From Schmidtea nova (taxonomy: Eukaryota): a stretch of 64,000 bases of DNA. Every line of letters begins with the position of its first letter. Position 1 is the first letter of the stretch. This document shows positions 11,678-35,602 of this stretch, piece after piece. Location: positions 357,926,001 through 357,990,000 of the forward strand of contig CM097883.1 in assembly GCA_044892505.1 (NCBI GenBank), in the 5' to 3' direction. The translations under genes were made by a program, and so were the position numbers. The notes under the pieces are model-generated. The model saw only the letters and a program-made list of their open reading frames with translations. It did not search any database and was not told where the DNA came from.

Positions 11678-11740
11678 CTTTATCTATGTCTGTTTTTGTA
11701 AACCGTTGAAGTACGACCAAATCTTTTCTTAATTGGAAAT
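11678..11740 (-). CDS. Predicted 63-nt mini-exon after A1 (DFQLRKDLVVLQRFTKTDIDK)
   Basis: 41-nt GT..AG intron followed by an open phase 1-1 exon ending AAG|GTACTT. Confidence 0.5.
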
Positions 11741-11781
11741 CTTAATAAAACGTAAAATTAAATATAAATTGGAAATAATAC

Positions 11782-12282
11782 CTGGAATGTAGAAATAATC
11801 CGCAATATGTATTTTATCTATCGCAGAACATAAATGAGATTCTCTATGTAAACTGTAATAATAATATTCTTGCGTAGTCCTCCACGAACTGAGAAGTGAG
11901 CAGTTTTGACAGACTTCTGGCATGAGGCATTCAGTTGAATACATTTTTGTGAAAGGAGAGGGTTTATAAATTATTTTCCTACATTTGAACATTGAACATT
12001 CGATTTCTGCGTGAGGATTCCAAAATGTATAATAATACGATTTTTTCTGTTCCATAGAGCAATTAAAAGTTTTTCTATTTAAAACAAAATTTCCGTTTGA
12101 TTGTAGCAAAGTCCAATTTCCTTTATACGAGCAATTTCTGCATGACTCTGGATGATAACAGTTGCTATGAGAGGTCTTTACTAAACCGTATCTTATCCCG
12201 TCAAAATAGAGCTTATAACTGTAAATTGCACATATTTCATATTTGCAAGTGATATCAAATCTTTCTTGTACCAATTTTTTGT
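11782..12282 (-). CDS. Cys-rich paralog A1: 501-nt phase 1-1 exon encoding two 6-Cys domains
   Basis: Open frame with 12 aligned Cys; ttaag acceptor at 12284-12283 and CAG|GTATT donor at 11781; homologous to A2, A3, B1 and B2. Confidence 0.75.
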
Positions 12283-12472
12283 CTTAAAATAAATAAATAA
12301 CAACTTCCAAAGTATATTGAATATCAAATTTTTACAATTGTAAAGTTTCAACGACAATAAGCAATAATTAATAGTTTGATTATCCTTGCCATTTTGTATC
12401 GAAACCTTGTGAGATGAAATAATAATCACCTCAATAAAATCTCGTTTTGATGTCACTTATTGTTGCTCTAAG

Positions 12473-12545
12473 TCAGGTGTGTCAAACCCGGCCGCCCAGG
12501 ACGGCTTTGAATGCGACCCAACAAAAGTCATATACTTAAAAACTT
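12473..12545 (+). mobile_element. Truncated hAT (Buster/Charlie-type) MITE terminus
   Basis: caggtgtgtcaaacccggccgcc resembles CAGGGGTGTCCAAAC-type termini. Confidence 0.45.
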
Positions 12546-14202
12546 TCTCAATTAATTTTTAAAACTAATTCATGTCGCTATTTCTTTAATTTGATAATAA
12601 AAAATTCATGAATTAATGAAGTTTAAATTACTTAAAATTGTTATACTGTACTCAATTATTCTGTACTCGAGTATTAGAGCATTTTCAATTGTGGATTATA
12701 GATTTTGTTTTCAATCATTTTGTTGTTTATAAATATGGAAATATTTATAAATATTCTTAAAAAATATTTTTTATAAAACAGAGAATATTATATTTTTAAG
12801 ATTAATTTATTTAAATTAAAAAAATTTTAATCGTTTTAAATTTTTTGACTATTTTAGAAAATTTATAAAAAAAGGAACCCATAAAAACAAGTTTTTAATG
12901 TAACTCTTTCTTTTTCTCATGTTCTCGGTTAATTTTATTGTTGTTTCATTGTTTGGGAGTTTCTAGGCCACAGTAAATTGAAAAATCACATTGTTTCAAA
13001 ATTTTTCAATTTTTCAATGGAATAATTTGTGGGCCACCACGAATCTGCTCGCAAATTTTCAGATCGATTGGATATCGGGAAGTGGGTTAAAAATTGATCC
13101 AAAGTTTGACAAGAAAACAATCAGAAATTGGAAGTTAAAAGAAAGTTAAAATACATTTTATTTTATTATTAATTTGTTTGATAAATCTTTTTATTTGATT
13201 TTTATTTGAATGGAAGATTGAGTGGCACCTGATAAAGAGAATTAAGTTCTCGAAATATATTGTGCAGAATATATTTTTGGATTGGCGTTTGGTTTTAATT
13301 ATTTTAGNNNNNNNNNNNNNNNNNNNNNNNNNNNNNNNNNNNNNNNNNNNNNNNNNNNNNNNNNNNNNNNNNNNNNNNNNNNNNNNNNNNNNNNNNNNNN
13401 NNNNNNNNNNNNNNNNNNNNNNNNNNNNNNNNNNNNNNNNNNNNNNCCTTTAGGGTTAGTATATTTTGTGTGGCTCAATATAACTCGTCTTCTTCCAATG
13501 TGACAAAGGGAAACGTAAAGGTTTGATACCTCTGATCCATGTCCTTCTTAAAATTTTACGTTTACTCATTTAATTTTATTTTCAATCTCCTTTTCCCTGT
13601 CTGTGAAAGCATATTGATTATTATTTTATTCTCTTTATATATTAAAATAATTCGTTTAATTATTATTTTTGGAACCAAATCACAATTGTTTGACAATCTT
13701 TAAACAACGTTTTTTGTGATATCCTTGGATATTGTTTGAAAAATAACAGGGTTAATTGATTTTCTATAAACCTTCCTCCCAATAACCTTCTCCATTCGCT
13801 TCATCAATCATAATACCATGATAATGGTTTCCTAATTTTCGCTTTTCCAATAACATACGTATTTAAAATTACAGTTTTTAGTGCGATATTCAATGCGATT
13901 TCTAATGGCATACGAGTTTTGAGCTTGTTTAGCGCCAACTGGCTCGAGATTCTTACATGAAATTGGTGAGAGCCAAATAAGTTCGAAAGGCGTATTTCAT
14001 TAGAAATTGCATTGAATATTAAATTAGAAAATTAATTGCTATCAGTCAGTCGTTTGAAAAGTCAAAAACGATTTTAAAAATATTTTTTATTAATTGAATA
14101 ATATTTTTTAATTTGTAATATTCTTCATATTTATATTTTTAATTTTTTTAATTTTCATTATTTTATTATTTGGAAGTTATTAAAAATAAAAATAATTCTT
14201 AC

Positions 14203-14715
14203 ATGAAAGGATGAAATAATCTTCAATTGGAATATTTTCTATCTCAAGACAAAATGAATTTCTCGTTAAAATACTTATAGAATTATTTTTTATTCCGTGA
14301 TGCCATGAACTGATATTACGGCAGCGTTGACAAACCGTTGACATTGGGCATTCTTCGGAATATATTTTAGTGAGAGGAGGGGGATATTGCCGATAGAATC
14401 GTTTTCTACAGTAACCACTTTGGCATTCAATGTCTCCTACTGTCGAGTAAGGGTCCGGAAACATTTCATTTGCAAATCTTTCTTGCTCAATTGAACAATT
14501 TGCAGTCTGTCGTTGTAAAGTATATTTCCCGTCTAATTCTAACAGAGCCCAATCTCCCTTGTATGTACAATTGTTGCATGAGGAGGGTTGGCAGTGTGAC
14601 TGGAAACCCTTCGTGAGGTTGTAGTTGACCCCATCAAAATAGAGTTTATATAGGAATATTTTGCATCGCCCATATTCGCAACTTATATCCTTTCTTGTGT
14701 GTACCAATTCTTTCT
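14203..14715 (-). CDS. Cys-rich paralog A2: 513-nt phase 1-1 exon encoding two 6-Cys domains
   Basis: Open frame with conserved C-x4-C, C-x3-5-C-x2-C, KGDW and LxR-x4-C; acceptor ttaag|AGAAAGAATTG, donor CAT|GTAAGA. Confidence 0.75.
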
Positions 14716-15736
14716 CTTAATAAAATATAAAAATTATTTTATTAAATTTACTTTAATTTATCGAAGAAATGGGAGAAATTAATCAAATCGAACGAAATGA
14801 AGAATCCGAGGAAAATCTTGACTAAATCCTCTTATTTGATGTTTATGAGATTCTCTGGTGGGACTCTTATTCATGTAACTGTTTAGGATAGGAAGATAAA
14901 TAATTTGTAAGGATGTTGTGAACATAATTAGGATTTGATTTTGTTAAAGCCANNNNNNNNNNNNNNNNNNNNNNNNNNNNNNNNNNNNNNNNNNNNNNNN
15001 NNNNNNNNNNNNNNNNNNNNNNNNNNNNNNNNNNNNNNNNNNNNNNNNNNNNNNNNNNNNNNNNNNNNNNNNNNNNNNNNNNNNNNNNNNNNNNNNNNNN
15101 NNNNNNNNNNNNNNNNNNNNNNNNNNNNNNNNNNNNNNNNNNNNNNNNNNNNNNNNNNNNNNNNNNNNNNNNNNNNNNNNNNNNNNNNNNNNNNNNNNNN
15201 NNNNNNNNNNNNNNNNNNNNNNNNNNNNNNNNNNNNNNNNNNNNNNNNNNNNNNNNNNNNNNNNNNNNNNNNNNNNNNNNNNNNNNNNNNNNNNNNNNNN
15301 NNNNNNNNNNNNNNNNNNNNNNNNNNNNNNNNNNNNNNNNNNNNNNNNNNNNNNNNNNNNNNNNNNNNNNNNNNNNNNNNNNNNNNNNNNNNNNNNNNNN
15401 NNNNNNNNNNNNNNNNNNNNNNNNNNNNNNNNNNNNNNNNNNNNNNNNNNNNNNNNNNNNNNNNNNNNNNNNNNNNNNNNNNNNNNNNNNNNNNNNNNNN
15501 NNNNNNNNNNNNNNNNNNNNNNNNNNNNNNNNNNNNNNNNNNNNNNNNNNNNNNNNNNNNNNNNNNNNNNNNNNNNNNNNNNNNNNNNNNNNNNNNNNNN
15601 NNNNNNNNNNNNNNNNNNNNNNNNNNNNNNNNNNNNNNNNNNNNNNNNNNNNNNNNNNNNNNNNNNNNNNNNNNNNNNNNNNNNNNNNNNNNNNNNNNNN
15701 NNNNNNNNNNNNNNNNNNNNNNNNNNNNNNNNNNNN

Positions 15737-15880
15737 NNNNNNNNNNNNNNNNNNNNNTAGACATAATTTGAATTTTTTATTTATTACAATTATCTTCTTA
15801 TATAAACAAATTTTACTTGTTTATATATATTTTAAATAAGTTTGGAATTAATTAACAAAATGAGTTAATTAAATCCAACA
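15737..15880 (-). repeat. 3' LTR (144 bp inferred; 15758-15880 visible)
   Basis: Starts TGTTGG just after the PPT; identical to the 5' copy where both are visible. Confidence 0.8.
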
Positions 15881-15889
15881 TAACTCCCC

Positions 15890-18883
15890 TCAAAGATTGG
15901 GTTCCGGCTCTATTGTTGCTCGCAGTCGATCAGCAGACACGATTTTATTTTTGTCGTTTATTGATATTTTGAATGTCTTGAGGTCTGGCGATCTTTCCAC
16001 TACTTTAAACGGACCATCATATGGAAGATCGAGCCCTTTGGTGATTGGCTTCTGTAACCATACCCTGGTGCATGTGGCCAGTTCTTTCTGTATGAAACTG
16101 TTTTGTTTTGAATCTATCTTCTTTTCTTTTGGTATGGGATTGTAGATGGTTGGGATATTGGATTCTTCTTCGTCAACTTCTGATGTTATGATCGATAAAT
16201 CGCCAGGTAATCTGAGTTTCGTTCCAAACACGAGTTCAGCTGGTGATGGTGAGTTATCTGAGGTGCAACAGCTGCGTAAACCTAGTAGTACTGTCGGGAG
16301 ATCATGAGCCCACGTTTTATTTGCGTCTGCCGCATGAGCCTTGAGCGAGTTCTTGAGACTTCTATGCCATCTTTCTACCTTCCCATTGCATTGTGGATGG
16401 TATGCTGTGGTTCGTCTATGTTCAATGCCCATATTTCTGCAAAAATTGTTAAATAAAGTAGATTCAAATTGCAACCCTTGATCACTGATGATAACTTCAG
16501 GTACACCGTATCTACTTATCCATTCTCTATTCAGTATTGTTACCACGTTAGAACTTGAGATTTCGTTAATTGGAATGGCTTCCCCCCACGACGTTGATCT
16601 ATCAATCATTGTAAGCATGAATCTCTTATTGCTTACTGGGGGTAATGGTCCTACGAGATCAATGTGAATGGTTTTGAATCGCCCAGTTGTTGGAATATCC
16701 ATGAGAGGGGTCTTAGTATGACGGCTTATCTTTGATTGTTGACATTTCTGACACTGACGATTCCAAGTTCTAATATCAGCTCGCATTTTTGGCCAAACAT
16801 ATCTTGATGCTAATAATCGCATCATTGGTTTGTAACCAGGATGTGAGATGTTGTGTAGCCTTTGAAATTCCTGGAATCTGAGTGATGTAGGAAGGATGAT
16901 TCTCGGCTTCCCCAGACTGATATCTACAAGGATACCATCTTTAGATTCACATAGATCCAGTGAAGTCATCTTTAGGTTTGCTAATAACTTGTCGGACTTT
17001 TGTTCTGTTAGGAGCTTTGCATTATCAAAGGTATTGATTGCTTCAATCTGGATCATGTCTATCTCCATAGAATGTTGTCTTGATAGAAGGTCAGCAGTTG
17101 CATTCTCTTTACCTTTAATATATTCGATCTTGAAGGTAAACTGAGAGAGATGTTCAATGATTCTCCATTGTCTTGTAGATGGCTCTTTCATCGACATTAT
17201 GTGAATGAGTGGCTTGTGGTCAGTATTTATTGTGAATGAAGAGGCTAGGAGATAGTGTTTGAAGTGTTTCGTTGCAAGTTGTATTGCCAGAAGTTCCCTG
17301 TCAAATGTCGAATATTTTATTTCGGATTTAGATAGCTTCTGAGAATAAAATGCGATTGGTATTAAACGATTTTCTGTATCTGTTTGATTTAGGCTTGCTC
17401 CAACGGCTACTGATGATGCATCCGTGCATAGTGTGAATGGCCTGGATGGGTCTGGATATCCAGTAGACACTTCTCTGCATAGGGCTGCTTTAGCTTGTTC
17501 AAATGCTCTATCATGGATTTCGTTCCAAATGAACTTTTTCTTGTTTCCTGAAGCTATTGTTATTAAATCATGCAATGGAGCCAAAATATCAGATAAATGT
17601 GGAGTCAACCAGTGGTAATATCCGATGGCGCCAATGAAGCTTCTTAGCATACGTACACATTTTGGTTTTTCTATTTTAAGAATGTTTGAAGTCTTTTCTT
17701 GAGATGCTCTTACTCCATTTTTGTCCAATTCGAATCCTAGAAATTGGATCCTTTCTTTATTGAATTCGCATTTGCTAATGTTGACTTTGAGACCGGCTGC
17801 ATAAAGGTTTTTCAGAACTGTTCTGACGTGAGATTTATGGTTCTCCAGGCTGTCTGAAAATATTAGAACATCATCTACATAAGCGACACAGAATGATTGC
17901 AAGTCTCTGAGAATGTTATCTATGTATCGTTGGAATGTCTGAGATGCATTCCGTAAGCCAAATGGCATCGTATTATATTGGAATAATCCAAATGGGGTTA
18001 TCACTGCAGTTTTGTCTCTGTCTTCTTCCGCAATCGGTATCTGGTGATAGGCTTTGATCATGTCTAATTTGGTGAAGTATTTGCTCCCAATCAGGCCATC
18101 AAGAATATCCTGGATTCTGGGAAGAGGATATTTATCTGGAATTGTGAGATTGTTGAGGAGTCTGTAGTCACCACAGGGTCTCCACGTTCCATCATGTTTT
18201 TTTACGACAACTAAAGGTGAGGCCCAACTACTTTTGCTTACTTGAATGACATTTTCTTTTAGTAATCGATCAAATTCAGCTTTGGTTGCTCTTAGTCGTT
18301 CTCCAAAAAGCTTACGAGACTTTTGAGATATTGCTTCTCCTTTTGTTATTATTTGCAATTGAACATCTGGTTTGGTGCTGATTATTGGCTTTTGTGGGTC
18401 AAAGATAATGTCATCATATTCACAAAATATACTATTCATCTTTGATACTTTTTGATAGCCTTTTGCGTATTCTGAAGTATTGATGTTGGAAATTTGCCTG
18501 TTCTTGCAACTGACATTCAGATCAAAGTGCGCCAAAAAGTCTGCTCCTATTATTGGTCTGCTGAGATTTGCTACGGCAAATATCCATTTGAATGGTTTTT
18601 GAAAGCCTTCAAATTTTAGCGATATTTCTCTGTCACCATAATACTCGATGATGGAGTTGTTGGCGCTGATTAATGTTCGCTTTCTGTCAAGTGATAGATT
18701 CGGTTCAAACAGTTTTGATGGCAATACGCTGGCATCGGCACCCGAATCTATGAGAAAGTCAACGCTGTGGTTGTTGGAGACAATTGCCGGTACGGTGAAA
18801 GTTTGATTTTGCTTCGGATTGTAGGCTGATGTGATCTCAAAGGTTCCAGGTACCGAATTTACTGGAACCTTCTCTCGTTTCCC
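15890..18883 (-). CDS. pol: Pol polyprotein (protease, RT, RNase H, integrase)
   Basis: FLIDSGAD protease, AYVDDVL RT, CTDAS RNase H, HHCC and DDE integrase, LPYDGPF GPY/F motif; no internal stops. Confidence 0.95.
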   Translation of the reverse strand, partial: GKREKVPVNSVPGTFEITSAYNPKQNQTFTVPAIVSNNHSVDFLIDSGADASVLPSKLFEPNLSLDRKRTLISANNSIIEYYGDREISLKFEGFQKPFKWIFAVANLSRPIIGADFLAHFDLNVSCKNRQISNINTSEYAKGYQKVSKMNSIFCEYDDIIFDPQKPIISTKPDVQLQIITKGEAISQKSRKLFGERLRATKAEFDRLLKENVIQVSKSSWASPLVVVKKHDGTWRPCGDYRLLNNLTIPDKYPLPRIQDILDGLIGSKYFTKLDMIKAYHQIPIAEEDRDKTAVITPFGLFQYNTMPFGLRNASQTFQRYIDNILRDLQSFCVAYVDDVLIFSDSLENHKSHVRTVLKNLYAAGLKVNISKCEFNKERIQFLGFELDKNGVRASQEKTSNILKIEKPKCVRMLRSFIGAIGYYHWLTPHLSDILAPLHDLITIASGNKKKFIWNEIHDRAFEQAKAALCREVSTGYPDPSRPFTLCTDASSVAVGASLNQTDTENRLIPIAFYSQKLSKSEIKYSTFDRELLAIQLATKHFKHYLLASSFTINTDHKPLIHIMSMKEPSTRQWRIIEHLSQFTFKIEYIKGKENATADLLSRQHSMEIDMIQIEAINTFDNAKLLTEQKSDKLLANLKMTSLDLCESKDGILVDISLGKPRIILPTSLRFQEFQRLHNISHPGYKPMMRLLASRYVWPKMRADIRTWNRQCQKCQQSKISRHTKTPLMDIPTTGRFKTIHIDLVGPLPPVSNKRFMLTMIDRSTSWGEAIPINEISSSNVVTILNREWISRYGVPEVIISDQGLQFESTLFNNFCRNMGIEHRRTTAYHPQCNGKVERWHRSLKNSLKAHAADANKTWAHDLPTVLLGLRSCCTSDNSPSPAELVFGTKLRLPGDLSIITSEVDEEESNIPTIYNPIPKEKKIDSKQNSFIQKELATCTRVWLQKPITKGLDLPYDGPFKVVERSPDLKTFKISINDKNKIVSADRLRATIEPEPNL
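18841..18883 (-). promoter_or_regulatory. -1 programmed ribosomal frameshift signal
   Basis: G GGA AAC heptamer in the gag frame (18883-18877), 6-nt spacer, then AGGTTCCAG/CTGGAACCT 9-bp stem; pol is in the -1 frame. Confidence 0.85.
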
Positions 18884-19620
18884 TGCTTCTGATTCTTTTG
18901 TTCCCATGAGCAGGGGGGTTGACATTTCTGGGCTTTTTCTCCAAACGTTCTATGATAATAACATAGAGTATCCAGTGATTGTGAAGGTGATTTGAGTGTC
19001 TGGCTGTACTTCAGTGCTGCTATTTGGTCTTCAACATTGTTTATTTTCATTAGATTATGCATAGCTTTCTTTTGATCCATTATGTTGTCCGCCATTTTCG
19101 CTATCTTCCAGATGTCTTCTTCGGACTGAAGGATCAGTGTATTTTGAATGTTTTCTGGTAACATTCTGAGGAATAGGTCCTTTAGCAGAACTAGAGATAC
19201 AGTTCCATTACCGTATTTAAATAGATTAGAATGAATGTCCTGGAGTGCTTCTGAGGGAGTACGATCTCCTAAATAACGATCGTTTAGGAGACTTTGAAGT
19301 GATACGGGATTGTTTCTGTTGTAATCTTCCAGCATTGCTTCTTTTAGATCTGTATAGGGCAATTTGCTTTCTGTTTCAAGCAAGTGAAAGAATTTTCTTG
19401 CGATTGCTGTTGGGATTGCCATTACTAAGTGCTGAAATTGGCTTCTTTCTGACTTGATTTTAGAGAATGCAAAAGCAATTTCCAGCTGTTTGATCCATGT
19501 GGGAAAATCACTGTTGTATATCGGTAATTTGATTGAGTTGGCTTGAATTTCTAGCTCTTCTACTGAAGATTCTGAGGCATTTCTGACACCATTGTTAAGT
19601 TTATCAAAAGAGATAGACAT
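18859..19620 (-). CDS. gag: Gag
   Basis: IKLPIY..FPTWIKQLEIAF N-terminal motif, LGDRTPS, and the CYYHRTFGEKAQKCQPPC (C-x2-H-x9-C-x3-C) knuckle. Confidence 0.9.
   Translation of the reverse strand: MSISFDKLNNGVRNASESSVEELEIQANSIKLPIYNSDFPTWIKQLEIAFAFSKIKSERSQFQHLVMAIPTAIARKFFHLLETESKLPYTDLKEAMLEDYNRNNPVSLQSLLNDRYLGDRTPSEALQDIHSNLFKYGNGTVSLVLLKDLFLRMLPENIQNTLILQSEEDIWKIAKMADNIMDQKKAMHNLMKINNVEDQIAALKYSQTLKSPSQSLDTLCYYHRTFGEKAQKCQPPCSWEQKNQKQGNERRFQ
19581..19591 (-). promoter_or_regulatory. Primer-binding site, tRNA-Leu(CAA)-like
   Basis: TGGTGTCAGAA lies 1 nt after the LTR end (...TTAACA); complementary to the ...UUCUGACACCA 3' end typical of animal tRNA-Leu(CAA). Confidence 0.75.
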
Positions 19621-19736
19621 AATTTGAATTTTTTATTTATTACAATTATCTTCTTATATAAACAAATTTTACTTGTTTATATATATTTTAAATAAGTTTG
19701 GAATTAATTAACAAAATNNNNNNNNNNNNNNNNNNN
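19593..19736 (-). repeat. 5' LTR (19593-19717 visible)
   Basis: Ends AACA, complementary to the TGTT start; remainder falls in a gap. Confidence 0.8.
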
Positions 19737-20272
19737 NNNNNNNNNNNNNNNNNNNNNNNNNNNNNNNNNNNNNNNNNNNNNNNNNNNNNNNNNNNNNNNN
19801 NNNNNNNNNNNNNNNNNNNNNNNNNNNNNNNNNNNNNNNNNNNNNNNNNNNNNNNNNNNNNNNNNNNNNNNNNNNNNNNNNNNNNNNNNNNNNNNNNNNN
19901 NNNNNNNNNNNNNNNNNNNNNNNNNNNNNNNNNNNNNNNNNNNNNNNNNNNNNNNNNNNNNNNNNNNNNNNNNNNNNNNNNNNNNNNNNNNNNNNNNNNN
20001 NNNNNNNNNNNNNNNNNNNNNNNNNNNNNNNNNNNNNNNNNNNNNNNNNNNNNNNNNNNNNNNNNNNNNNNNNNNNNNNNNNNNNNNNNNNNNNNNNNNN
20101 NNNNNNNNNNNNNNNNNNNNNNNNNNNNNNNNNNNNNNNNNNNNNNNNNNNNNNNNNNNNNNNNNNNNNNNNNNNNNNNNNNNNNNNNNNNNNNNNNNNN
20201 NNNNNNNNNNNNNNNNNNNNNNNNNNNNNNNNNNNNNNNNNNNNNNNNNNNNNNNNNNNNNNNNNNNNNNNN

Positions 20273-22311
20273 TGACTATAGATCAAAATTTTTTTTTATA
20301 AACAATAACACAATATTTCGGCACAGCCTTTATCAAGTGTGTATTTCTATCGTTATATTTACTTAATCCTAAATAGTAGCCTTAATTATTTTTTTAATAT
20401 TTTATAATGATTTTATTGGATGAAAAAATTTATTTTATTTTAATTTTTTGTGCGAATTGAATGTTGATGGAAGGTTTGTATTTTTTTATGAAAAAAGTCT
20501 CGGAAGCTAATCTTTGTAATGAATTTTTGAATCCCTCTTGTAGGATCTGGCATTTTGTTTCTTCTATAGATGGAGTTGTTTTATGTACTTTTTCCCAGTG
20601 TTCGTAATAATTACTGGTTTTGATTTTAGTATGTTCATTAAGTCGGGTGCGAAAAGTTCTATGTGTTTCTCCTATGTAAGTAGCGTCACATTTTTGACAA
20701 GAAAGTTTATATACTATATTTTTGGAAAAGCAAAAGCATCGGGTTGTGGAACGACAAAGACATTTATGTTTGGAGATGTTGGAAATTGGTGGCTTTCGGA
20801 GTTGTGATTTTAACGGTGCGGAGGTTATGAACGTTGGACGGATGTGGATAGGCAAATCTGTTTGATTAAAAATGTTGGTGATTTTGTTGGCTGTAGTGTC
20901 ATTTAGGAAAGGTAATCTTAGATATGTTGTGTGTTTGTTATTGTTATTGTGTTTCTGGCGTTTTCTATTGTTGCGTTTATTGTGGTATGGTTCGTTAAGG
21001 AAGTGTTTCTTTACAAAGTCTTCAGGGTATCCATTTTGGAGGAATCGTATTTTGAAGTTTTCTAATGTTTCTTGTATTTTGTTTGCGTCTGAACAGTTTC
21101 TTATGGCTCTTTTTCTTTCTCCTATTAGTAATGCGATTTTGCGTTGAAGTGGAACGTGGCTTTTCCATGGGAGGATATGACCGCTATGTAAACCTTTAGA
21201 ATATAGCTCGGTGTTTGCATTTAGTGTATCTTGGCCTTTTGTGAAACTTACCATGGTATCTAAAAACGGTATTTTACCTTCTGTGTTCGGTGGTTCAAAA
21301 GTAAATTGTATGTTGGTGTTAGTAGAATTTGCGTGTGATAGGATTTGATTGAGAGGGATTGTGGAGACTATGAAGATGTCGTCGATGTATCGTTTCCAGA
21401 AAAGTATTTTGTCCCCAAAAAAAGATATGATCTTAGATTCTATAAAGTTCATGTAGAAGATGGCTAAGATGGGAGAAAGGTTATTACCCATGGCTAATCC
21501 ATGAATTTGTTTGAATGGTTTTTCTTTAATTATGACAGTATCTGAATTTATTGCTAATTTTAGAAGTTCTATAAAGTCTTGTTTAGTTAAGTCTGCGAGG
21601 TCAGTATTGGCTTTATGAGTTTCAAAGAAAGAAGCTGCGATATCGAAAATGTTATTCTCTCCGTGAAGAGGAATAGATCCGTAAAGATTGGAAACGTCAA
21701 GAGATCCCCAGAAGTACTGTTGTCCTGAGTTTAACGGAAGAGACGTATTTGTAATTTCGGAGACGAATTCAGTTGTGTTTTTAAGATGAGAAGGAACCAA
21801 AGGCAAAAGTGTTTTTAGAATTTCTGAAAGAACTTTAGAAAGTGTTGTGGAAGGAGTGTCAACTGCAGATACAAGAGGTCTACCTTTTAAAGGACTTTTG
21901 TGATCTTTAGGTAACATAGTCATATTACTAGGTAAAGGCTCACTGCAGTTGCATTTTAAAAGTAAATCTTTGATTTGAAGGTTAATTTGTTTATTTGCAA
22001 GTGTTGAAAGTTTCTTATTGTATAAAATCTGAGTCGATGCAGGTAAGATTATTTTGTTTATCGGTTCATAGTTCGAGAGATGTTCTTCAAATAGAGTATT
22101 GTATTGTTCTGTGTCAAGGGCAATTAGTCGATTTGTTTTATCTGATGGAAGAATTGTGAAGTCTTTGGAATTCTTAATTTTCTTTATGTTTGAAGTGAAA
22201 GAATTTTGTGTTGAGCAATGTTTTTCAAGAAAGATAATTTGTTCTCTGACTAAAGTTTTGACTTTAGTTTCTAAACAGCTGAGTTTTTCTTCAAGTTCAG
22301 TCGAAAAGACA
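20273..22311 (-). mobile_element. Penelope-like retroelement, 5'-truncated copy 1
   Basis: Open RT (GSLDVSNLYGSIP, GLAMGNNLSP, RYIDDIF) fused to GIY-YIG (IVYKLSCQKCDATYIGET); 3' UTR carries a hammerhead-like motif. The track's start codon spans the junction and is artificial. Confidence 0.92.
20308..20342 (-). ncRNA. Minimal hammerhead ribozyme-like motif (PLE variant)
   Basis: Reverse complement of ACACAC-TTGATAA-AGGC-TGT-GCC-GAAA-TATT-GTGT. Confidence 0.55.
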
Positions 22312-23745
22312 GGGGATCTTGACGTTTCCAATCTTTACGGATCTATTCCTCTTCACGGAGAGAATAACATTTTCGATATCGCAGCTTCTTTCTTTGAAAC
22401 TCATAAAGCCAATACTGACCTCGCAGACTTAACTAAACAAGACTTTATAGAACTTCTAAAATTAGCAATAAATTCAGATACTGTCATAATTAAAGAAAAA
22501 CCATTCAAACAAATTCATGGATTAGCCATGGGTAATAACCTTTCTCCCATCTTAGCCATCTTCTACATGAACTTTATAGAATCTAAGATCATATCTTTTT
22601 TGGGGACAAAATACTTTTCTGGAAACGATACATCGACGACATCTTCATAGTCTCCACAATCCCTCTCAATCAAATCCTATCACACGCAAATTCTACTAAC
22701 ACCAACATACAATTTACTTTTGAACCACCGAACACAGAAGGTAAAATACCGTTTTTAGATACCATGGTAAGTTTCACAAAAGGCCAAGATACACTAAATG
22801 CAAACACCGAGCTATATTCTAAAGGTTTACATAGCGGTCATATCCTCCCATGGAAAAGCCACGTTCCACTTCAACGCAAAATCGCATTACTAATAGGAGA
22901 AAGAAAAAGAGCCATAAGAAACTGTTCAGACGCAAACAAAATACAAGAAACATTAGAAAACTTCAAAATACGATTCCTCCAAAATGGATACCCTGAAGAC
23001 TTTGTAAAGAAACACTTCCTTAACGAACCATACCACAATAAACGCAACAATAGAAAACGCCAGAAACACAATAACAATAACAAACACACAACATATCTAA
23101 GATTACCTTTCCTAAATGACACTACAGCCAACAAAATCACCAACATTTTTAATCAAACAGATTTGCCTATCCACATCCGTCCAACGTTCATAACCTCCGC
23201 ACCGTTAAAATCACAACTCCGAAAGCCACCAATTTCCAACATCTCCAAACATAAATGTCTTTGTCGTTCCACAACCCGATGCTTTTGCTTTTCCAAAAAT
23301 ATAGTATATAAACTTTCTTGCCAAAAATGTGACGCTACTTACATAGGAGAAACACATAGAACTTTTCGCACCCGACTTAATGAACATACTAAAATCAAAA
23401 CCAGTAATTATTACGAACACTGGGAAAAAGTACATAAAACAACTCCATCTATAGAAGAAACAAAATGCCAGATCCTACAAGAGGGATTCAAAAATTCATT
23501 ACAAAGATTAGCTTCCGAGACTTTTTTCATAAAAAAATACAAACCTTCCATCAACATTCAATTCGCACAAAAAATTAAAATAAAATAAATTTTTTCATCC
23601 AATAAAATCATTATAAAATATTAAAAAAATAATTAAGGCTACTATTTAGGATTAAGTAAATATAACGATAGAAATACACACTTGATAAAGGCTGTGCCGA
23701 AATATTGTGTTATTGTTTATAAAAAAAAATTTTGATCTATAGTCA
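22312..23745 (+). mobile_element. Penelope-like retroelement, more deeply 5'-truncated inverted copy 2
   Basis: Near-identical reverse complement of 20273-21709; has a 2-nt deletion at its start, a 1-nt T-run deletion near 22596-22601 and one synonymous substitution that I noticed. Confidence 0.92.
23676..23710 (+). ncRNA. Minimal hammerhead ribozyme-like motif (PLE variant)
   Basis: acac / cttgataa a ggc tgt gcc gaaa tatt / gtgt: stem I acac-gtgt, stem II ggc-gcc, palindromic ATAT stem III. Confidence 0.55.
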
Positions 23746-24690
23746 TTATGAGAATTATTGATAATAATAATAAAAAAAGATCAAANNNNNNNNNNNNNNN
23801 NNNNNNNNNNNNNNNNNNNNNNNNNNNNNNNNNNNNNNNNNNNNNNNNNNNNNNNNNNNNNNNNNNNNNNNNNNNNNNNNNNNNNNNNNNNNNNNNNNNN
23901 NNNNNNNNNNNNNNNNNNNNNNNNNNNNNNNNNNNNNNNNNNNNNNNNNNNNNNNNNNNNNNNNNNNNNNNNNNNNNNNNNNNNNNNNNNNNNNNNNNNN
24001 NNNNNNNNNNNNNNNNNNNNNNNNNNNNNNNNNNNNNNNNNNNNNNNNNNNNNNNNNNNNNNNNNNNNNNNNNNNNNNNNNNNNNNNNNNNNNNNNNNNN
24101 NNNNNNNNNNNNNNNNNNNNNNNNNNNNNNNNNNNNNNNNNNNNNNNNNNNNNNNNNNNNNNNNNNNNNNNNNNNNNNNNNNNNNNNNNNNNATAGTAAG
24201 TAAGTATTAAGTATGGTAAGTAAATAATATGATAATATTATGATAAAAATATTATGATAATTATTATAAAAAGTTATAATATTTAATCTCATATTTTTTC
24301 AAAACACTTCATTATGAATTCGCGTGGGTCGAGTTAGTTCCACGGTATACTCCTCATTAATACCATATTACTAAAAATGTCGGCTGCTTTCACTCAAAAT
24401 CTTTATAAGATAATTTCTTGGATTATTTATATAATTATTTCGAAAGTTTATTTAACCATAATTAAAACCACGTGTTACTGGGGGGATTTATATGATAATT
24501 AAAAGGGGAGGCCTTTGGTAAAAAAATATATATTATTAAAAAAACGTCAATGGCAATTTTTTAGCATATATTACTTAGACTTACACCCAATTTCACAGGC
24601 AGCGTAAAGGGTTAGCTTGGTAAGGTAGATGTTAAAATGATTTATAAATCTCGGAAAATTAGTAAAAAAGAAATGGAATAAAAGCTTTAC

Positions 24691-25237
24691 CTTGTAAATA
24701 GAAAGAACTTCCGAAACCAATGAGGCTTGCGGCATTGCAATTATGAACCTCCCTTTTGATTGTGTAATCATTTTCATAATTCTGTCGCCATAAACGAGAA
24801 GTGTGGCAATTCCTACAGGAGATATCGTCACACTTCAGCAGCTCTGTCACATAGAGAACGGTATTATATGCTTTATAAACAGGTAGGGTGCAGACGTAAT
24901 TGAGGCATTGGACTTCTGATATTGTTGAAACTGAGTCCGGAAATAAGTCGAGCAAATCATTTGTATCCTGTAACGCACAAGATTGTACCTCTCGTTTAAG
25001 ATTCCCGGTTGCTAAGAGGTAAGGAACATCCCATTCGCCTTTCACAAGGCAGTTATTGCAGTTCGTTCGAAAGCAAGGTTTTCTCTCTATTCCTGCAAAT
25101 GTAAATCCAGATCCATTTCTTAGAAAAGTGTAAGTGTAAAGGGTGCAATTGTTACTGAAGCAAGAGTTATCTGTAATCCTATAGTATTGTCCATTGAGGG
25201 CGGGTAGAATTAGTATTGCAAACACCTCCGGAATCAT
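24691..25237 (-). CDS. Cys-rich paralog B1: first exon with signal-peptide-like N-terminus and two 6-Cys domains
   Basis: MIPEVFAILILPALNG hydrophobic leader, 12 aligned Cys, phase-1 donor AAG|GTAAAG; the next mini-exon appears frameshifted. Confidence 0.75.
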
Positions 25238-26319
25238 CCTCCGCAGTTATTGTCAACAACGAGAATGATATGAAAAGTTAGTTAAACTTTATGTTAATGA
25301 AAATATTGCGATTGAGAAACAAGATCTCATTAATGCGTACTTATCACATGTTATACTATAATGGCGGTAGCATTTAGTGACGCCAGGGTCCCCTACCATC
25401 CAATCTGAAGCCGTGTATATTTTCCATTTGAGTTAACGTTTTACAGTAGGATGGGTAATTTGACTTGTTGAGAATAACAAATGCCGCCTCGAGAAGGTTT
25501 TCACTAATAAGTGAGCAATGTTTTTCATAGCCTCTACCTTCGCTAAAGGTCGCAGCAAAACGCTATTGAAAAGTAAACCTTGCAATTATTGAAACCAATA
25601 AATTATATTTATCCAACAAATGTCTTGGGAGATTTTATATTATTTTAATTATAATTTGAAGCATTACTTGAAGCTCCTCACCTTAGCTTAGTTAACCTTG
25701 ATTGTCACTTTATTTTCTATCTAAACGCACTCTGGAAAAAATGTTATTGGAGGGGTCACCATAATTATATATAATATATCTGCAAATAAAATCTGATAAA
25801 ATATTAAAGTCAAAATATCTCTACAAATTGCATTATTATTTAAAATATTTAATGTTAATAATTATGGATTGTCAGTGGGTATCTGACCTTCAATATCTAT
25901 GGTAACAAATGTAATTTAGCAGTCATCAGATAGGATTCCCTCTACTTCTCCATCGTTATCCCACGATATATACCAGTAAATTCGGAGCTAGGCACGTTCG
26001 CGTTGTTACTGTAATATGTAGTCGATATACTACTTCAGAAGTGAGCGCTCATCGCACTTTGAGCCCGCACCTACAAATTAATTACATGTGTCTATAGAAG
26101 GCACTTTTGAGTTTCAGCGTACCTTAACCAGGATTAGTCTTTCACTGATGCATGCTTCCAACATACATTTCATTGACAAACACTTTGACTGTTTATTTCT
26201 TTCTCAATTATGCCGAATCACCATCTCAGGCTTACACCTACTTTTAATTATACATCCAATAGTTTTCGAGAATTTTAAGCAGCGTTCTGCCTTATTTTTT
26301 AGTTCACATTTGGAATTTA

Positions 26320-26738
26320 CTGTAAAATCCCGAGTATAAGCTGCAGCTAATACGTACATTAAGGCAACATTTCTGAATTGCAGCTAATATGATGTGCAGC
26401 TTATACAACTAAAAAACAATTCAACTTCTTTTTTCTTTGCTGAACTAAAAGATCTTCGTTGTTTCTTTTGTTTTTGTTCCAAATCGTTATCCATTTTAAT
26501 CAAGGATTCAAAAAGTGCAATAAACAATATAAACGATATAAACGATTAAAACAAAATGGTTATTGTTTTTTTAATGATATTTGTTTTTTAATGATAGGTT
26601 TCTGATTTTAAAATCAGGTGTTTTCAACGCAAATGGTGCAGCTAATACGTGCTGCGGTTTATACGACTAAAAATACATTTTTATAAAAATGTCGTCTGCA
26701 GCTAATACGCGCTGCAGCTTATACTTGAGATTTTACAG
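26320..26738. mobile_element. Tc1/pogo-type MITE with ~30-bp TIRs and TA flanks
   Basis: ta|ctgtaaaatcccgagtataagctgcagc ... gctgcagcttatacttgagattttacag|ta; internal repeats of gcagctaata/gcagcttatac. Confidence 0.85.
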
Positions 26739-29039: not shown

Positions 29040-30027
29040 ATGTTAGGTTTTTCTTGAATCGATCCTATAAGAACACCAAGAAGTCAGACAAACAGCAGCG
29101 ACTAATTTGTGATCCATATCCGGATGGGATGTGCAATTATCTAAAATCAATACAATTTTTCGATTAACAGTGCTTAATTCAAGATTCCAATCTAACAAAA
29201 TATTTCCCCATATTTCTTTTGTTATCCAGGCACTACAATTGTTCTTATAATTTACACCTAGATTTTGATCTTTATCTTTAAAGCATCACGGGTTTTTTAG
29301 CAGTAAGGGTTTCTATTTCCCCTAAAGCACTTGCACATACCCATACAGTAGTTCTCTCCTTAGATATGTTTACACCATTGCAAATATCTGTTTTAAATCG
29401 AGGTGTCGTCGAAGGAATGGCTTTGTAGTATAAACCTGTCTCATCTCTATTAAAAATATTCTTGTCCTCATATTCCTCTCTAATTAGCTTCCAGGTATTT
29501 TCAAGTCAATCTTTAACTACTCTCATATATAATCTGCCACATTCACCTGATAATTTTCCTCGTTTATTACCGTGTCGTCCACGAAAACGTTGAATCCAAC
29601 TGGTATCAATATTGACATCTTCCTTTCCAAGTTCCATCTTCAAATCATTAGCATCACACAATAATTTGGATTTTCCTAGCCCTCATGTTCGTAAACCATT
29701 TGAACAACCTTTCATCAATATCAACAAGCCCAAACTACCTTTTTGCTTTCTGTTTCCTTTTGCCCAAATCAACTTGGTCACTGATAAATTCTTTATTTTT
29801 TAATAAAGTCAAAAGGGTAGATGGTTGTATATCATTTTCCTAGCAACAAACGATTTTCTGTGACCTAAGTCAATTTCCTGTTTTCCATCAAAACTCATTC
29901 TCTTTCTATCGGATTTCATTAATTATAAGGATTAAATTAAATTCAATATTTCGCAATAAAAAATCAATTAATTCGCAATATAAAGTTTTTTCGCTATATA
30001 AAACTCGTTACTGACAGTTTATACTGT
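29040..30027 (-). mobile_element. Degenerate pogo/Tigger transposase
   Basis: Fragments WIQRFRGRHG, NRDETGLYYKAIPSTT and NRKIVLILDNCTSHP; TA|CAGTATAAAC TIR-like start. Confidence 0.75.
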
Positions 30028-31557
30028 ATATATTTGTTTTTAATTGTCATCTGCTTCCACTTTCTCTATGAAATATTTTGATGTTTATAATTTTTTGATT
30101 TTTATGCATAGATTGTAAAAAAGTATGAATTGTGCGCATTTGCTTCAAGTTTTATTAAATAAGAATTTTTAATTACTAAATAAACCTTTTCAGTTTAATA
30201 ATGTTCATGAATTTGTGTTTGGTTTTTATTTTGGGATCTTTAACGTATTTTAATCATTTAATTGAAAATAAAAATAAATTGTTTCTGGTCATATAAATGT
30301 GTGTGTGTGTTTCATCTTACAATATATCCAGCTGAATCTTTATTAATTTGCATCACTCTAGCACGTGTAAATCACCTTATCTTATTTATTTGAGGGTTGA
30401 ATATTTTTGAGTTTAGTGACGACTGGTCATTTAGGCTTTGGCTTTGGCCAATCATATTTACCTGCTCCGCGCTGTCTGATACATACTAAAAAATGGCGGC
30501 AAGGGGAAGTAACAAAAGTAATAGCTAAAATGTATTATTTGATCACAGTCAACCGATCAGCTTCCTGCAGAAACATAGCACCAAACTGAATGCAAATAAG
30601 ATCAGCACTGACACCGAACTGACGATCACTGAAATAATTACCCAATTGTTCCAGAATTGAGCTAAATGGAAATATCATTAATAAGTTAAATAATTGTATA
30701 AATTATTATATCAAATCTTCCTCTATCTTCTCTCGAGAGGTTATTACACTTCCCGGCATATCTCCAATTAAATGTTTGAGCCCTTTAATTGGAACCTTTT
30801 TTGTATTGGTAATTCCGAGGCCTTCTTTGGTCCCAATCTGGACCTGCTCTCATTGTTGCGGCTTGTGATGATTTCATTTTATTATTTCTGCTCCCATTTC
30901 TCCTTTTACTTCATCATCTTTCATAATTCTTTCTTTTTATTATCCAGAATTTTTTATAAAAAGTATTTTCAAATGTCTTTCACTTAATTAATTTCTCAAA
31001 ATATTTTCGAGAAAATTTTCTAGTTTTCAGAAAAATTCATTACTTGAATCTGATTCTTTTCTATGGGCTAAAGCAGTAAATTGCTGAATGCAAACTGCTT
31101 TTATAACTTTCTTCAATATTCCTTGAATCATATGTTCTTGTGGCTTGAATGGCAGAAATGCTTTCAGAAATTTTTCACCATGTTCTTCAGCCGTCTCTGT
31201 TAATTCGAAGAATTTTTCCACTTCACCCAACGATGAAAATCTCTGGAGGTTTAATAAATTGCAGCAGTCGAGGTCACCATATTAAGATCATTAATCTTAT
31301 TTTAGTACATAAGCAATAATTCGAAAGATTTTCCAAAATTTTATTATTAAAACAACAACGTTTTAGACGAAAAGAATTTATTAATGTCTTTTCATATTCT
31401 GTGCGATACTGATATAATTCATTCATTTACATAATAATTGATATTTACAGTTAACTAACTTGTTCCTCCAAACGGTTTTCGTGCTTTTCAATAATTTAAA
31501 AGACATTTGAGATAAATTTAACAATACACTTAAAAAATATATATATATATATATATA

Positions 31558-32032
31558 TAGGCCCGGATAGAGGGGGCTAGAAGGACCATATGGCACGGGC
31601 CCCGCTTTTAAAGGGTCCCAATTTCAAATTAATCAGGATAGAAATTTTAATTTTTAAACGAAGGAAAATATAACCATGTCATAAATAGTTCATTCGGCTT
31701 CTTCTAAAATTTAAAAATTGAGAAGTATTAAAAAATAATCCGAAAAAATTTAATACATGCTTTTTTATACCATTTTTTCTGACTATGCGTGAAAGGTTTA
31801 TTTTTCAAATATCATTAAAGAATTTGCTAATTCAAAAGCGCGCAAAGCATTTCTAAAATAATTAAAAGAAATTAAATTATTATGTAAATTAAATGTATAT
31901 CAGTAAATAAAAAATAATTGTTTTTGTTATAATTCAAACAACAAGACAGAAAATTAAATATTTTTTTTTTAATATAATTTGTGGGTCCCGAGAAATATTT
32001 TAGGCCCGGGCCCCATTGAAGCTTTCTGTGGG

Positions 32033-32036
<4 letters not shown>
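31558..32036 (+). mobile_element. Non-autonomous hAT derivative inserted in a (TA)n tract
   Basis: Termini taggccc...gggccta with GGGCCC subterminal motifs; internal IIKEFANSKARKA resembles a hAT transposase C-terminus. Confidence 0.65.
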
Positions 32037-32095
<59 letters not shown>

Positions 32096-32123
32096 AATAT
32101 GTTTAATATATAATTAATATTAC

Positions 32124-32174
32124 TTTCTGGTGGTGGCGATCGAGTAGTAGTTAAAGTATTACAGTTTAGAAACC
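32124..32174 (-). CDS. Predicted 51-nt mini-exon after A3 (GFLNCNTLTTTRSPPPE)
   Basis: 42-nt GT..AG intron followed by an open phase 1-1 exon ending GAAA|GTAATA. Confidence 0.5.
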
Positions 32175-32216
32175 CTAAATTTACAGTAAAATTAATTAAA
32201 AATTAATAAATAAAAC

Positions 32217-32726
32217 CAGGGACAATGAAAAAATCTGCCATATTTATTTTTTCTATTTCAGGACACAAATATGAATTTCTTGTTAGAAAGGCGCTGCTGG
32301 AATAGGTTAAATTCCATGAGCTGACATAAGAACAGTTTTGACAAATTTCTGACATTAGACATTCTTCCGGGTTCATTTTGGTTAGCAAACCTCCATATTG
32401 ACTATAGAATATTTTTCTACACTTGTGATTGCGGCATTTAATGTCTACTATTGTTGAGTACGATTCTGGAAGCGTTTCATTTACCATTCTTTGAGGTTCC
32501 ATTGAGCAAAAGGAAGTTTTTCTTTGTAAAAAATAACACCCATTTAAGTTTAATAAAATCCAATCTCCTTTATATCTGCAGTTATAGCATGAAGAAAGCT
32601 GACAGTTTGATAGGAAAACTTTCGACAGGCTGTAGCTGACCCCATCAAAATAGAGTTTATATCGAAATACTTGACAATGTCCATATTCACATCTTATGTC
32701 ATTTCTTTCATTTATCAATTCTTTCT
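32217..32726 (-). CDS. Cys-rich paralog A3: 510-nt phase 1-1 exon encoding two 6-Cys domains
   Basis: Open frame, same acceptor context as A2, donor at the aligned PG codon. Confidence 0.75.
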
Positions 32727-35055
32727 CTTAATTAAAAATAAAAACGGTCATATTAAATTTTATTTATATAGAAAATGACAGAATTTAATTTGATAAACAG
32801 AGAAAAATCTTTCTTTATTCCCCTTGAATATTACACATGGATGATGTCCCCTGTAAATTATACAAATAGGTGACAAAGCAATAAAGCATTTGCTCAAAAG
32901 GTTTGAGCCGTCGAATATGTTTTATAGTGGTGAATTCAAAGAATTATAAACGTATGGATAAAGTGATTAATGTCAATATGTATCTAAATTTGGTTACATC
33001 AGAGGGTTTCAAGCATTTTTTGCAAAGCAGCTCATTTTTATAATCTTTTGAAAAGTGGAACCCCAAATCTGAAAAAGAGGTAAAATAATAAAGATATTAT
33101 TAAGAATGAATAAAGTTTTACTTTTGTTTTTTTCCTAGGGCACCGCATAATACAGATTGAAAATCATTGGATTACATGACATAATTACACAAAGTATTAC
33201 ACATGTGTACATGTGCGCATGCAGCATGTTGAAGGTGTTGCTAACCTTTGTTCCCATTGCTGTTCATATTTGCACTGCAGACGCTCATTATAAACTGCAA
33301 TATGTATATAACTTCCTGACTGGAGACTTTTGGAAGGCCGGGGTACGATTAATATGCCCCTTAGTAAGGGATATGGTTAACATTTTAATACCTGTAGGTG
33401 TTGATACAAATATCTTATTGGTAAGGCCAATAACTGTTTGAGGAGTTGAATTAGTGATATTATAATGTCAATTTGAATAATAAATTGTTACTCATTTTTA
33501 TCTCGTGGCAAACTGTTTTTGTCAAATTGAAAAGAAATTTGTCCTTGCAACCCCTTTTGATTTAATACTGATTCTTATCAAGTTGATACAGGAAATTAAA
33601 TAAGTAAGAAAATGCATTAATTGTTGTTTTTTTCTAAAAAAAAATAAAACTAATTTGAACAAATACAAATAATTTATTATAGTGCAACAAATATCCAAAA
33701 CAAAGCTACGACATAAATTGCATCATCTCGCATTCCGCCATCTTATTACACAATGAGATTTGTTGCATATTTTGAATTTATGTAAAATTAATTTTATTAT
33801 CCGATTTCACTCGAAATAGATTCAAACTCATTTTTTATTCATTACAATCAATTTTACATACCACACTCACTTTCTACCAAATCACAAACATTTATCTTTT
33901 TACTGGAATACAGTCCTATAAATAAGTATGAATAGGTACTTCCCCATAGGCTTTCCTATATTTGTATTGAACTTCTAAATGCGGACACCGAAAATATAAC
34001 TATTTGCGTCTGTGTTATTGTGGCGATATTTTAGTGCTAGCTACTGTTGAAAGTTGGAAATTGAAAGATTAATGTTGAAAGTTGACAAATGAATGAAAAT
34101 ATCACCATTAACCATACCCACAAAATATCGTTGATAGCAAAAAAGTTCACCTCAAAATTGCAGACATGACGGAATGTGCAAATTTCAAATTGCTACCATT
34201 CACAGTTTGAGTGGATATCTGGTGACAGACATACAAGTTAGTGTATTTTCTGTTTTATATTATAGATTAGATATTTATGTCGAAAGATACACAAACNNNN
34301 NNNNNNNNNNNNNNNNNNNNNNNNNNNNNNNNNNNNNNNNNNNNNNNNNNNNNNNNNNNNNNNNNNNNNNNNNNNNNNNNNNNNNNNNNNNNNNNNNNNN
34401 NNNNNNNNNNNNNNNNNNNNNNNNNNNNNNNNNNNNNNNNNNNNNNNNNNNNNNNNNNNNNNNNNNNNNNNNNNNNNNNNNNNNNNNNNNNNNNNNNNNN
34501 NNNNNNNNNNNNNNNNNNNNNNNNNNNNNNNNNNNNNNNNNNNNNNNNNNNNNNNNNNNNNNNNNNNNNNNNNNNNNNNNNNNNNNNNNNNNNNNNNNNN
34601 NNNNNNNNNNNNACTGCGATCATAAAATGCTGTTATTATTTCGAACATAGTAATATATTAATATATTCTGATAAGTATATAATCTGCTTTTAGTTTTGGA
34701 AATAAAAAAGTGGAGTACAATATTTTATTACAGATAAATAACTTATCGTGTTAACTGAGGCATTTAGTTTTGAACATCTATTTCTGTGTGCGTAATTAAC
34801 ATCAAGCTATGGCGAGGATACGCGATAAAAGAATTTATCATGTTATAAATGTACAAGGTTATTCCAAAAAGCACTGGAAATAAATGTGTACCATGTTCCT
34901 TCGCTATGCCGCTAGGTAAGGATAGGTATATTGAAAAACCAACTTGCGAAATTACGACTTCGTAGGTATCTTTGAACTCTGCACAAATACAGGGGGTGGC
35001 AGTAATTTCAAAATTGCAAAAGCTTATTAAAAGATAAATAAAATAAAAACTATAC

Positions 35056-35602
35056 CTGGTAAATGGAAGTATTTTCCTGAATCAATTTTGTTAATAGCTG
35101 AGCAATTATAAACATATCTTTCAATAATATTATTTTTCGGAATGCGATGTTGCCATAAACGAGAAGTGTGGCAATTCCTACAGGAGATATCGTCACACTT
35201 CAGCAGCTCTGTCACATAGAGAACGGTATTATATGCTTTATAAACAGGTAGAGTGCAGACGTAATTGAGGCATTGGACTTCTGATATTGTTGAAACTGAG
35301 TCCGGAAATAAGTCGAGCAAATCATTTATATCCTGTAACGCACAAGATTGTACCTCTCGTTTAAGACTCCCAGTTGCTAAGAGGTAAGGAACATCCCATT
35401 CGCCTTTCACAAGGCAGTTATTGCAGTTCGTTCGAAAGCAAGGTTTTCTCTCTATTCCTGCAAATGTAAATCCAGATCCATTTCTTAGAAAAGTGTAAGT
35501 GTAAATGGTGCAATTGGTACTGAAGCAAGAGTTATCCGTGATCCTATAATATTGTCCATTGAGGGCGGGTAGAATTAGTATTGCAAACACCTCCGGAATC
35601 AT
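35056..35602 (-). CDS. Cys-rich paralog B2: first exon with signal-peptide-like N-terminus and two 6-Cys domains
   Basis: Same 547-nt exon length as B1, donor CAG|GTATAG, then a 33-nt intron. Confidence 0.75.

Follow-up and report, generated by a model that had tools for sequence, protein, structure and literature searches.

An apparently flatworm-restricted six-cysteine module in Schmidtea nova, probably carried by two tandem genes for membrane glycoproteins

What kind of protein is encoded by a row of cysteine-rich reading frames that matches no catalogued domain family, and how many genes do these frames represent? The question is raised by a stretch of 64,000 nucleotides of the Schmidtea nova genome (assembly GCA_044892505.1, contig CM097883.1, positions 357,926,001 to 357,990,000 of the forward strand; hereafter the window, numbered from its first letter), in which an original prediction, made from the letters alone, had seen a cluster of five paralogs for a secreted or surface protein built on a duplicated six-cysteine domain. 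We estimate with a probability of roughly 60% that the locus consists of two tandemly duplicated, spliced multi-exon genes for type-I membrane glycoproteins of a small flatworm-restricted family. The original prediction was right on the domain and probably wrong on the number of genes and on secretion.

The five minus-strand frames are all present where they had been placed, as the listing of open reading frames and the inspection of splice sites agree; their limits are those of exons bounded by splice sites, not of entire genes. We call them B2 and A3 (gene X) and B1, A2 and A1 (gene Y), B denoting the first-exon type and A the internal type. The predicted 12 aligned cysteines per protein are recovered by alignment as 12 columns invariant in all five, together with Y, W, L, R, N, G and K positions, and both tblastn and a hidden Markov model (HMM) of the module find exactly five copies of the double module in the window. 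The internal duplication is likewise confirmed: an HMM built from the five N-terminal halves gives the C-terminal halves 10.8-21.3 bits, while 1,000 shuffled C-terminal halves reach at most 9.4. Long stop-free frames in AT-rich DNA had also been remarked on, and runs of 167-182 codons are indeed expected only 0.03-0.11 times per window at the window's composition (~29% GC, with 14 gaps of N); GC content is 0.32-0.42 in the exons versus 0.21-0.35 in their flanks. To the earlier description of the module two points are added: it measures ~81 residues, where ~75 had been given, and it ends in an additional conserved [DE]-x-F(-x-x-P) motif. Its consensus reads D-I-x-C-x4-C-x4-Y-x14-18-C-x4/5-C-x2-C-x5-W-x10-12-R-x4-C-x9-11-[DE]-x-F, with six invariant or near-invariant cysteines spaced C-x4-C...C-x4/5-C-x2-C...C and no adjacent cysteine pair. 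A3 carries a 13th cysteine, which is unpaired.

The frame boundaries speak for splicing. All five frames are closed at a homologous position by a GT donor in phase 1 (CCAG/GTAT, CAAG/GTAAAG, CCTG/GTTT, TCAT/GTAAGA). Each of the three A frames starts in phase 1 directly after a T-rich tract and TTAAG, lacks an ATG and is closely preceded by a stop codon; among the five, an ATG followed by a hydrophobic leader is confined to B1 and B2, in keeping with what had been predicted. In these two exons a signal peptide ahead of the first module is indicated by hydropathy only, and the A exons begin instead at an acceptor. On the minus strand, the order from 5' to 3' is B2, A3, transmembrane exon, B1, A2, A1, transmembrane exon. 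Exon 1 of gene X (B2, 35056-35602) comprises the ATG, the hydrophobic leader MIPEVFAILILPALNG, two six-cysteine modules and the phase-1 donor CCAG/GTATAG; exon 2 (A3, 32217-32726) is symmetric (phase 1-1), with two modules between a T-rich tract with its TTAAG acceptor and the end CCTG/GTTTTA; and the terminal exon (30549-30661) opens at the phase-1 acceptor TTTAG/CT and encodes QFWNNW, a transmembrane helix and the tail CFCRKLIG before a TGA stop. Gene Y, on the same strand, begins with B1 (24691-25237), which has an ATG, a leader as in B2, two modules and the phase-1 donor CAAG/GTAAAG, and continues with two symmetric phase 1-1 exons of two modules each, A2 (14203-14715) and A1 (11782-12282, ending CCAG/GTATTA); its terminal exon (7774-7898) has the phase-1 acceptor TTTTTTAG/AT, YFWNFW, a transmembrane helix, the tail RFRRKWLTILFS and a TGA stop. 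The 35 nucleotides 5' of the A3 and A2 acceptors (32727-32761 and 14716-14750) have stayed conserved (AAATTTAAT...TTTTTAT.TTT.ATTAAG) in spite of saturation at neutral sites between the two paralogs, which probably reflects constraint on a branch point and pyrimidine tract. In A3 this stretch holds an in-frame ATG followed by six codons and a stop; a search for an in-frame leader relic 5' of the A exons found only the conserved T-rich tract.

The transmembrane exons stand out in a comparison of the DNA downstream of A1 and of A3, where they form the single conserved block (30661-30549 and 7898-7774). Both encode [YQ]-F-W-N, a hydrophobic helix, basic residues and a stop, behind a pyrimidine-rich TTTAG acceptor in phase 1. 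A scan that recovered both found no further such exon elsewhere in the window, and none after B1, B2 or A2. When joined, B2, A3 and the transmembrane exon of gene X give an in-frame protein of 389 residues with four modules, 27 cysteines and six N-x-S/T sequons, and B1, A2, A1 and the transmembrane exon of gene Y one of 561 residues with six modules, 36 cysteines and 11 sequons. All other combinations of exons are also in frame, for example a B exon joined directly to a transmembrane exon (219 and 223 residues). Taken together, the leader, the even cysteine counts and the sequons make the proteins look extracellular. Of the proposed "secreted or surface" nature, the surface part is thus retained; secretion is disfavoured by the transmembrane exons and by the relatives described next, which end in a transmembrane helix.

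An exhaustive profile search of 1.84 billion representatives returned seven proteins (P0001-P0007; E 3e-33 to 2e-12; 120-273 residues), from UniParc (UPI000602ED1E, UPI00060F2E8E, UPI00060176D7, UPI000609C445), Logan (SRR21676451, SRR33002330) and ENA (ERZ27256860). They share the double six-cysteine module with its Y, W, R and [DE]-x-F columns and, judged by sequence, are true homologues. P0002, P0003 and P0005 have the same layout within a single open reading frame: a signal peptide, ERxDIxC, one double module, a stalk, a transmembrane helix and a short tail. In P0002 and P0005 the helix follows an FWN or FWD motif; no clear FWN stands ahead of the helix of P0003, and P0001 lacks a helix but has FWN. 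P0002 stems from a contig of 946 nucleotides (L001) with a 5' untranslated region and an uninterrupted frame, which looks like a spliced mRNA. The contigs encoding P0004 and P0007 (L002 and L003) are genomic and show a phase-1 donor after the module exon, as in the window. In the relatives the signal peptide directly precedes the ERxDIxC start, whereas the A exons of the window are leaderless and apparently internal. All seven are unnamed and lack a Pfam domain. B2, a 5-sequence profile and a 12-sequence profile, used as queries in word-based homologue searches, brought up nothing, or P0006 again; a collection of 15 billion proteins contains no identical protein; and no description of the module family was found in the literature, whether by planarian family or by run and UniParc accession. 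The family seems lineage-restricted, apparently to flatworms, and with seven relatives among 1.84 billion representatives it is as lineage-specific as had been proposed. Within it, the second module of P0004 and P0005 has an extra cysteine pair that other members do not share (FFC or AFC before the module, LNC in the loop between the second and third strands), which looks like a fourth disulfide added in one subfamily. Next to the P0007 gene on the ENA contig (L003:1-162), a fragment resembles, by eye only, a Tc1/mariner-type DDE transposase (DNASIHK...LPAYSPFLNP).

The module is a real, undescribed domain family. The original prediction had not recognised it as EGF, TSR, Ly6 or the apicomplexan 6-Cys fold, and searches of Pfam, of PDB sequences and of folds are all without a match. 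In Pfam, the exons, the relatives and 23 individual modules have no accepted match, the best values (E 0.0023-0.85) belonging to unrelated families hit by single sequences below the cut-offs; a PDB sequence search gave no match to the module. AlphaFold predicts the fold with confidence, both for the A3 double module from a 12-sequence alignment (predicted local distance difference test, pLDDT, 93.1; predicted template modelling score, pTM, 0.86) and for a single module from 23 aligned modules (pLDDT 90.4, pTM 0.77). Three long antiparallel strands, a short helix at C-x-N-C, a hairpin, and a short strand and helix at [DE]-x-F make up the predicted module. Against the PDB, Foldseek places the best hit of the double module at E 0.0075 with a template modelling (TM) score of 0.13 and that of the single module at E 0.46. 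A fold search of the ESM Atlas gives TM scores of at most 0.36 (double module) and 0.45 (single module), an exhaustive VIA scan of the PDB and a second look there were blank, and language-model feature searches of the Atlas return noise-level neighbours only (Ly6-like, 0.77; herpesvirus glycoproteins, 0.77).

The six-cysteine scaffold is under purifying selection, as had been proposed: by the Nei-Gojobori method the ratio of nonsynonymous to synonymous divergence (dN/dS), which the original prediction had suggested computing between paralogs, is 0.29 for A2/A3, 0.38 for A1/A2 and 0.19 for A1/A3 at a dS of ~1-2. At this divergence all 60 scaffold cysteines are retained, and all seven exons are intact. 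The B copies, which had passed for simply close paralogs, have a mixed history. B1 and B2 differ at nine of 450 coding nucleotides over codons 1-150; in the last 32 codons they have diverged as far as the A exons have (proportions of synonymous and nonsynonymous differences, 0.59 and 0.40). Their DNA similarity fades within ~30 nucleotides of the exon-1 frame, that is, 22 nucleotides 5' of the ATG and at an in-frame stop 32 nucleotides past the donor. This pattern fits an old tandem duplication followed by recent gene conversion over 35153-35624 (B2, minus strand, from 22 nucleotides 5' of the ATG to codon 150) and its partner tract 24788-25259 (B1, minus strand), which homogenised the first 150 codons. 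A tree of exons and relatives groups the A exons into a single clade (98/100) that sits among the relatives, with the B exons on a long branch of their own.

How would such proteins be built, and what might they do? The phase-1 exons, the transmembrane exons found only after A3 and A1 and the transmembrane helix at the end of the relatives together argue for type-I membrane proteins and most likely for two genes, so that the "five paralogs" are probably exons and not genes. Each protein would start with a signal peptide, continue as a chain of ~81-residue, beta-rich modules, each presumably held by three disulfides, and end with the FWN motif, one transmembrane helix and a tail of 5-12 residues. 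One module pair would be encoded per exon; because every boundary is in phase 1, the frame would survive the gain or the skipping of a pair. The products would enter the secretory pathway, be N-glycosylated and insert into the membrane as type-I proteins, with a cysteine beside the helix on the cytoplasmic side as a possible acylation site. Given the absence of a cytoplasmic domain, the proteins probably work through binding at the cell surface, whether for adhesion, for recognition or as co-receptors. We infer the splicing, expression, membrane topology, disulfide bonding and function of the window genes. A further step is more tentative and in our estimate falls somewhat short of even odds: that the module is a new disulfide-stabilised beta fold defining flatworm-restricted surface receptors, whose ectodomain grew from two modules to four and to six as neighbouring gene copies became internal phase-1 exons.

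The quality of the assembly bears directly on this model. Runs of N touch none of the five module exons and neither transmembrane exon, the nearest gaps lying 238 (A2), 444 (B2) and 499 nucleotides (B1) away, and every gap falls inside a predicted intron. Contigs from independent DNA runs span B2, A3 and the transmembrane exon of gene X, with no difference in run X1, and end at the edges of the gap 34297-34612. The runs that contain the B2 and A3 exons all belong to one study; the four examined are read as genomic DNA, since their contigs are collinear with the genome and have Nextera adaptor ends. Several points count against the two-gene reading. Exon order and linkage across the gaps are dependent on the scaffold, and every predicted intron between module exons holds an unread gap able to hide a transmembrane or signal-peptide exon. 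The gaps in which further exons might be concealed are those at 13308-13446, 14953-15757, 23786-24192 and 34297-34612. Run searches found no run recorded as RNA that contains the B2 or A3 exon, hence no junction or expression was seen. A basic n-region is missing from the B-exon leader, proteins with several module pairs are without precedent among the seven relatives, and the fold is predicted, on the basis of 12-23 sequences.

Could the frames be five separate genes after all, each double-module exon having its own signal peptide and transmembrane exon for a product of ~220-260 residues, with the missing exons lying in gaps or being too short or diverged to be seen? The relatives, which carry at most one double module per protein (in P0007 a single module before the phase-1 donor), would agree with this, as would the gap present in each of the intervals B2-A3, B1-A2 and A2-A1, and a weak candidate for a leader micro-exon lies 73 nucleotides upstream of A1 (12392-12356, MARIIKLLIIAY). 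Yet such micro-exon candidates are about as frequent as chance would give, show no conservation between the A copies and have poor donors, and A2 has no ATG in the 237 nucleotides before its gap. In all four visible genomic cases (B1, B2, L002 and L003) the leader shares an exon with the module. The gaps make up only ~7-18% of the relevant intervals, the 139-nucleotide gap between A2 and A1 could hardly fit a transmembrane exon, an intergenic spacer and a leader exon, and no frame resembling a transmembrane exon follows B1, B2 or A2 in a scan that finds both real ones. We thus regard five genes as unlikely, although it is an alternative to be taken seriously. That the module instead belongs to a known disulfide-rich superfamily, such as the three-finger Ly6/uPAR proteins, and has diverged too far for the searches to catch it, seems improbable: weak neighbours in the feature search do include Ly6/uPAR, Toxin_TOLIP, QVR and Activin_recp clusters (scores 0.76-0.77), but Pfam gives no match to UPAR_LY6 (PF00021 and its clan), Toxin_TOLIP, Activin_recp or QVR (at E <=10 for the exons and E <=1 for the relatives and 23 modules), and three-finger structures are absent from all fold-search lists.

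Decay or capture could in principle also explain the locus. Neutral relics, that is, decaying and unexpressed copies, would account for the exons being found in no RNA run and for the lack of an identical protein among 15 billion, and the retroelements that load the first intron of gene Y and the unpaired cysteine of A3 point the same way; against this stand the seven intact exons, the scaffold cysteines kept under a dN/dS of 0.19-0.38, and the conserved splice sites and phases, while missing RNA data for this species are not evidence of silence. We consider relics very improbable. Still less credible is an envelope-like glycoprotein of transposon or viral origin carried by the adjoining mobile elements. 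Small cysteine-rich glycoproteins with a signal peptide and a transmembrane helix do adjoin Gypsy, reverse transcriptase and Helitron elements here, and P0002 has herpesvirus membrane glycoproteins as its weak neighbours in the Atlas (0.76-0.77). These scores are, however, at noise level, the viral structure library BFVD has no match to the double module (best E 0.022, TM score 0.18), and the exons lie outside the reading frames of the elements and are predicted to be spliced. Moreover, the depth of DNA runs over the exons is that of single- or low-copy sequence, neighbouring repeats being far higher, up to hundreds to thousands of times, which disfavours a gene borne by a transposon.

The mobile elements themselves deserve a brief description. 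The predicted first intron of gene Y, of ~10 kb, is filled and inflated by retroelement insertions (15890-23588): a Ty3/Gypsy-type element and a pair of reverse transcriptase (RT) elements. The former (15890-19620, minus strand) encodes a Pol of 1011 residues (RVT_1, RNase H, integrase zinc-binding and rve domains) and an overlapping gag-like frame of 253 residues (DUF7041); it is apparently intact, has the same orientation as gene Y and is flanked by gaps. The RT element forms a head-to-head inverted pair (20430-23588) whose frames at 20430-22331 (minus), 22099-22650 (plus) and 22764-23588 (plus) share identical protein stretches; Pfam reports RVT_1 only (8e-8), and a GIY-YIG-like C-terminal motif seen by eye suggests a Penelope-like element. 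Also in gene Y, a repeat of ~300 bp occurs in the same orientation in the A1-to-transmembrane intron (8965-9266) and in the A2-to-A1 intron (12832-13146); at 84-93% identity it is far more similar than the surrounding exons and is therefore a fragment that was mobilised or duplicated recently. The predicted introns of gene X contain repeats of very high copy number, with summed contig depths in DNA runs of 19,000-189,000 at 33055-33408 and 2,500-3,900 at 31462-31992 (flanking unique sequence is at ~50 in run X1). Further along, a Helitron on the plus strand (51043-55957; frames of 465, 394 and 746 residues, the second with Helitron_like_N, 2e-58, and the third with a PIF1 helicase, 9e-56) accounts for the GC-richer block at 50-56 kb.

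Modular, disulfide-rich ectodomains are familiar, and this module has neither a Pfam family nor a solved relative nor a structural neighbour despite confident predictions, so it is well placed to be a new domain family, and it may be a new fold as well. The flatworms include the planarians used as models of regeneration as well as major parasites, meaning that lineage-specific surface proteins in this group are of practical interest. With its phase-1 exons, tandem duplication and gene conversion, the locus illustrates how surface proteins can be remodelled, their expression here being predicted only.

How does the predicted protein compare with known systems? The apicomplexan s48/45 proteins are also lineage-restricted surface proteins with six cysteines per module and tandem pairs of modules; theirs is a beta-sandwich of ~120 residues with another cysteine spacing, and neither PF07422 (searched with exons, relatives and modules) nor any structural match was found; the similarity is in name only. 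The cysteine-rich domains of the TNF receptors are similar in architecture, being chains of six-cysteine repeats in the ectodomain of type-I membrane proteins. Their repeats, however, are ~40 residues long and consist mostly of loops, whereas the window module has ~81 residues with long predicted strands, and the short tail of the window proteins has no signalling motif; PF00020 and structure searches gave no match. The Ly6/uPAR proteins offer a parallel in design: they are small disulfide-rich beta modules of ~70-90 residues, sometimes in tandem, with a signal peptide and a membrane anchor, and have undergone lineage-specific expansions. We take the architecture of a signal peptide, two small cysteine-rich domains and a membrane anchor to resemble that of the two-domain Ly6-type proteins of the flatworm tegument. 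The Ly6/uPAR signature comprises 8-10 cysteines, an N-terminal C-x2-3-C and a C-terminal CC-x4-5-C-N; the window module differs in having six cysteines and no CC...CN, and its anchor is a transmembrane helix preceded by FWN. The two families could nevertheless do a similar job, plausibly the binding of partners at the cell surface by proteins that have no intracellular domain.

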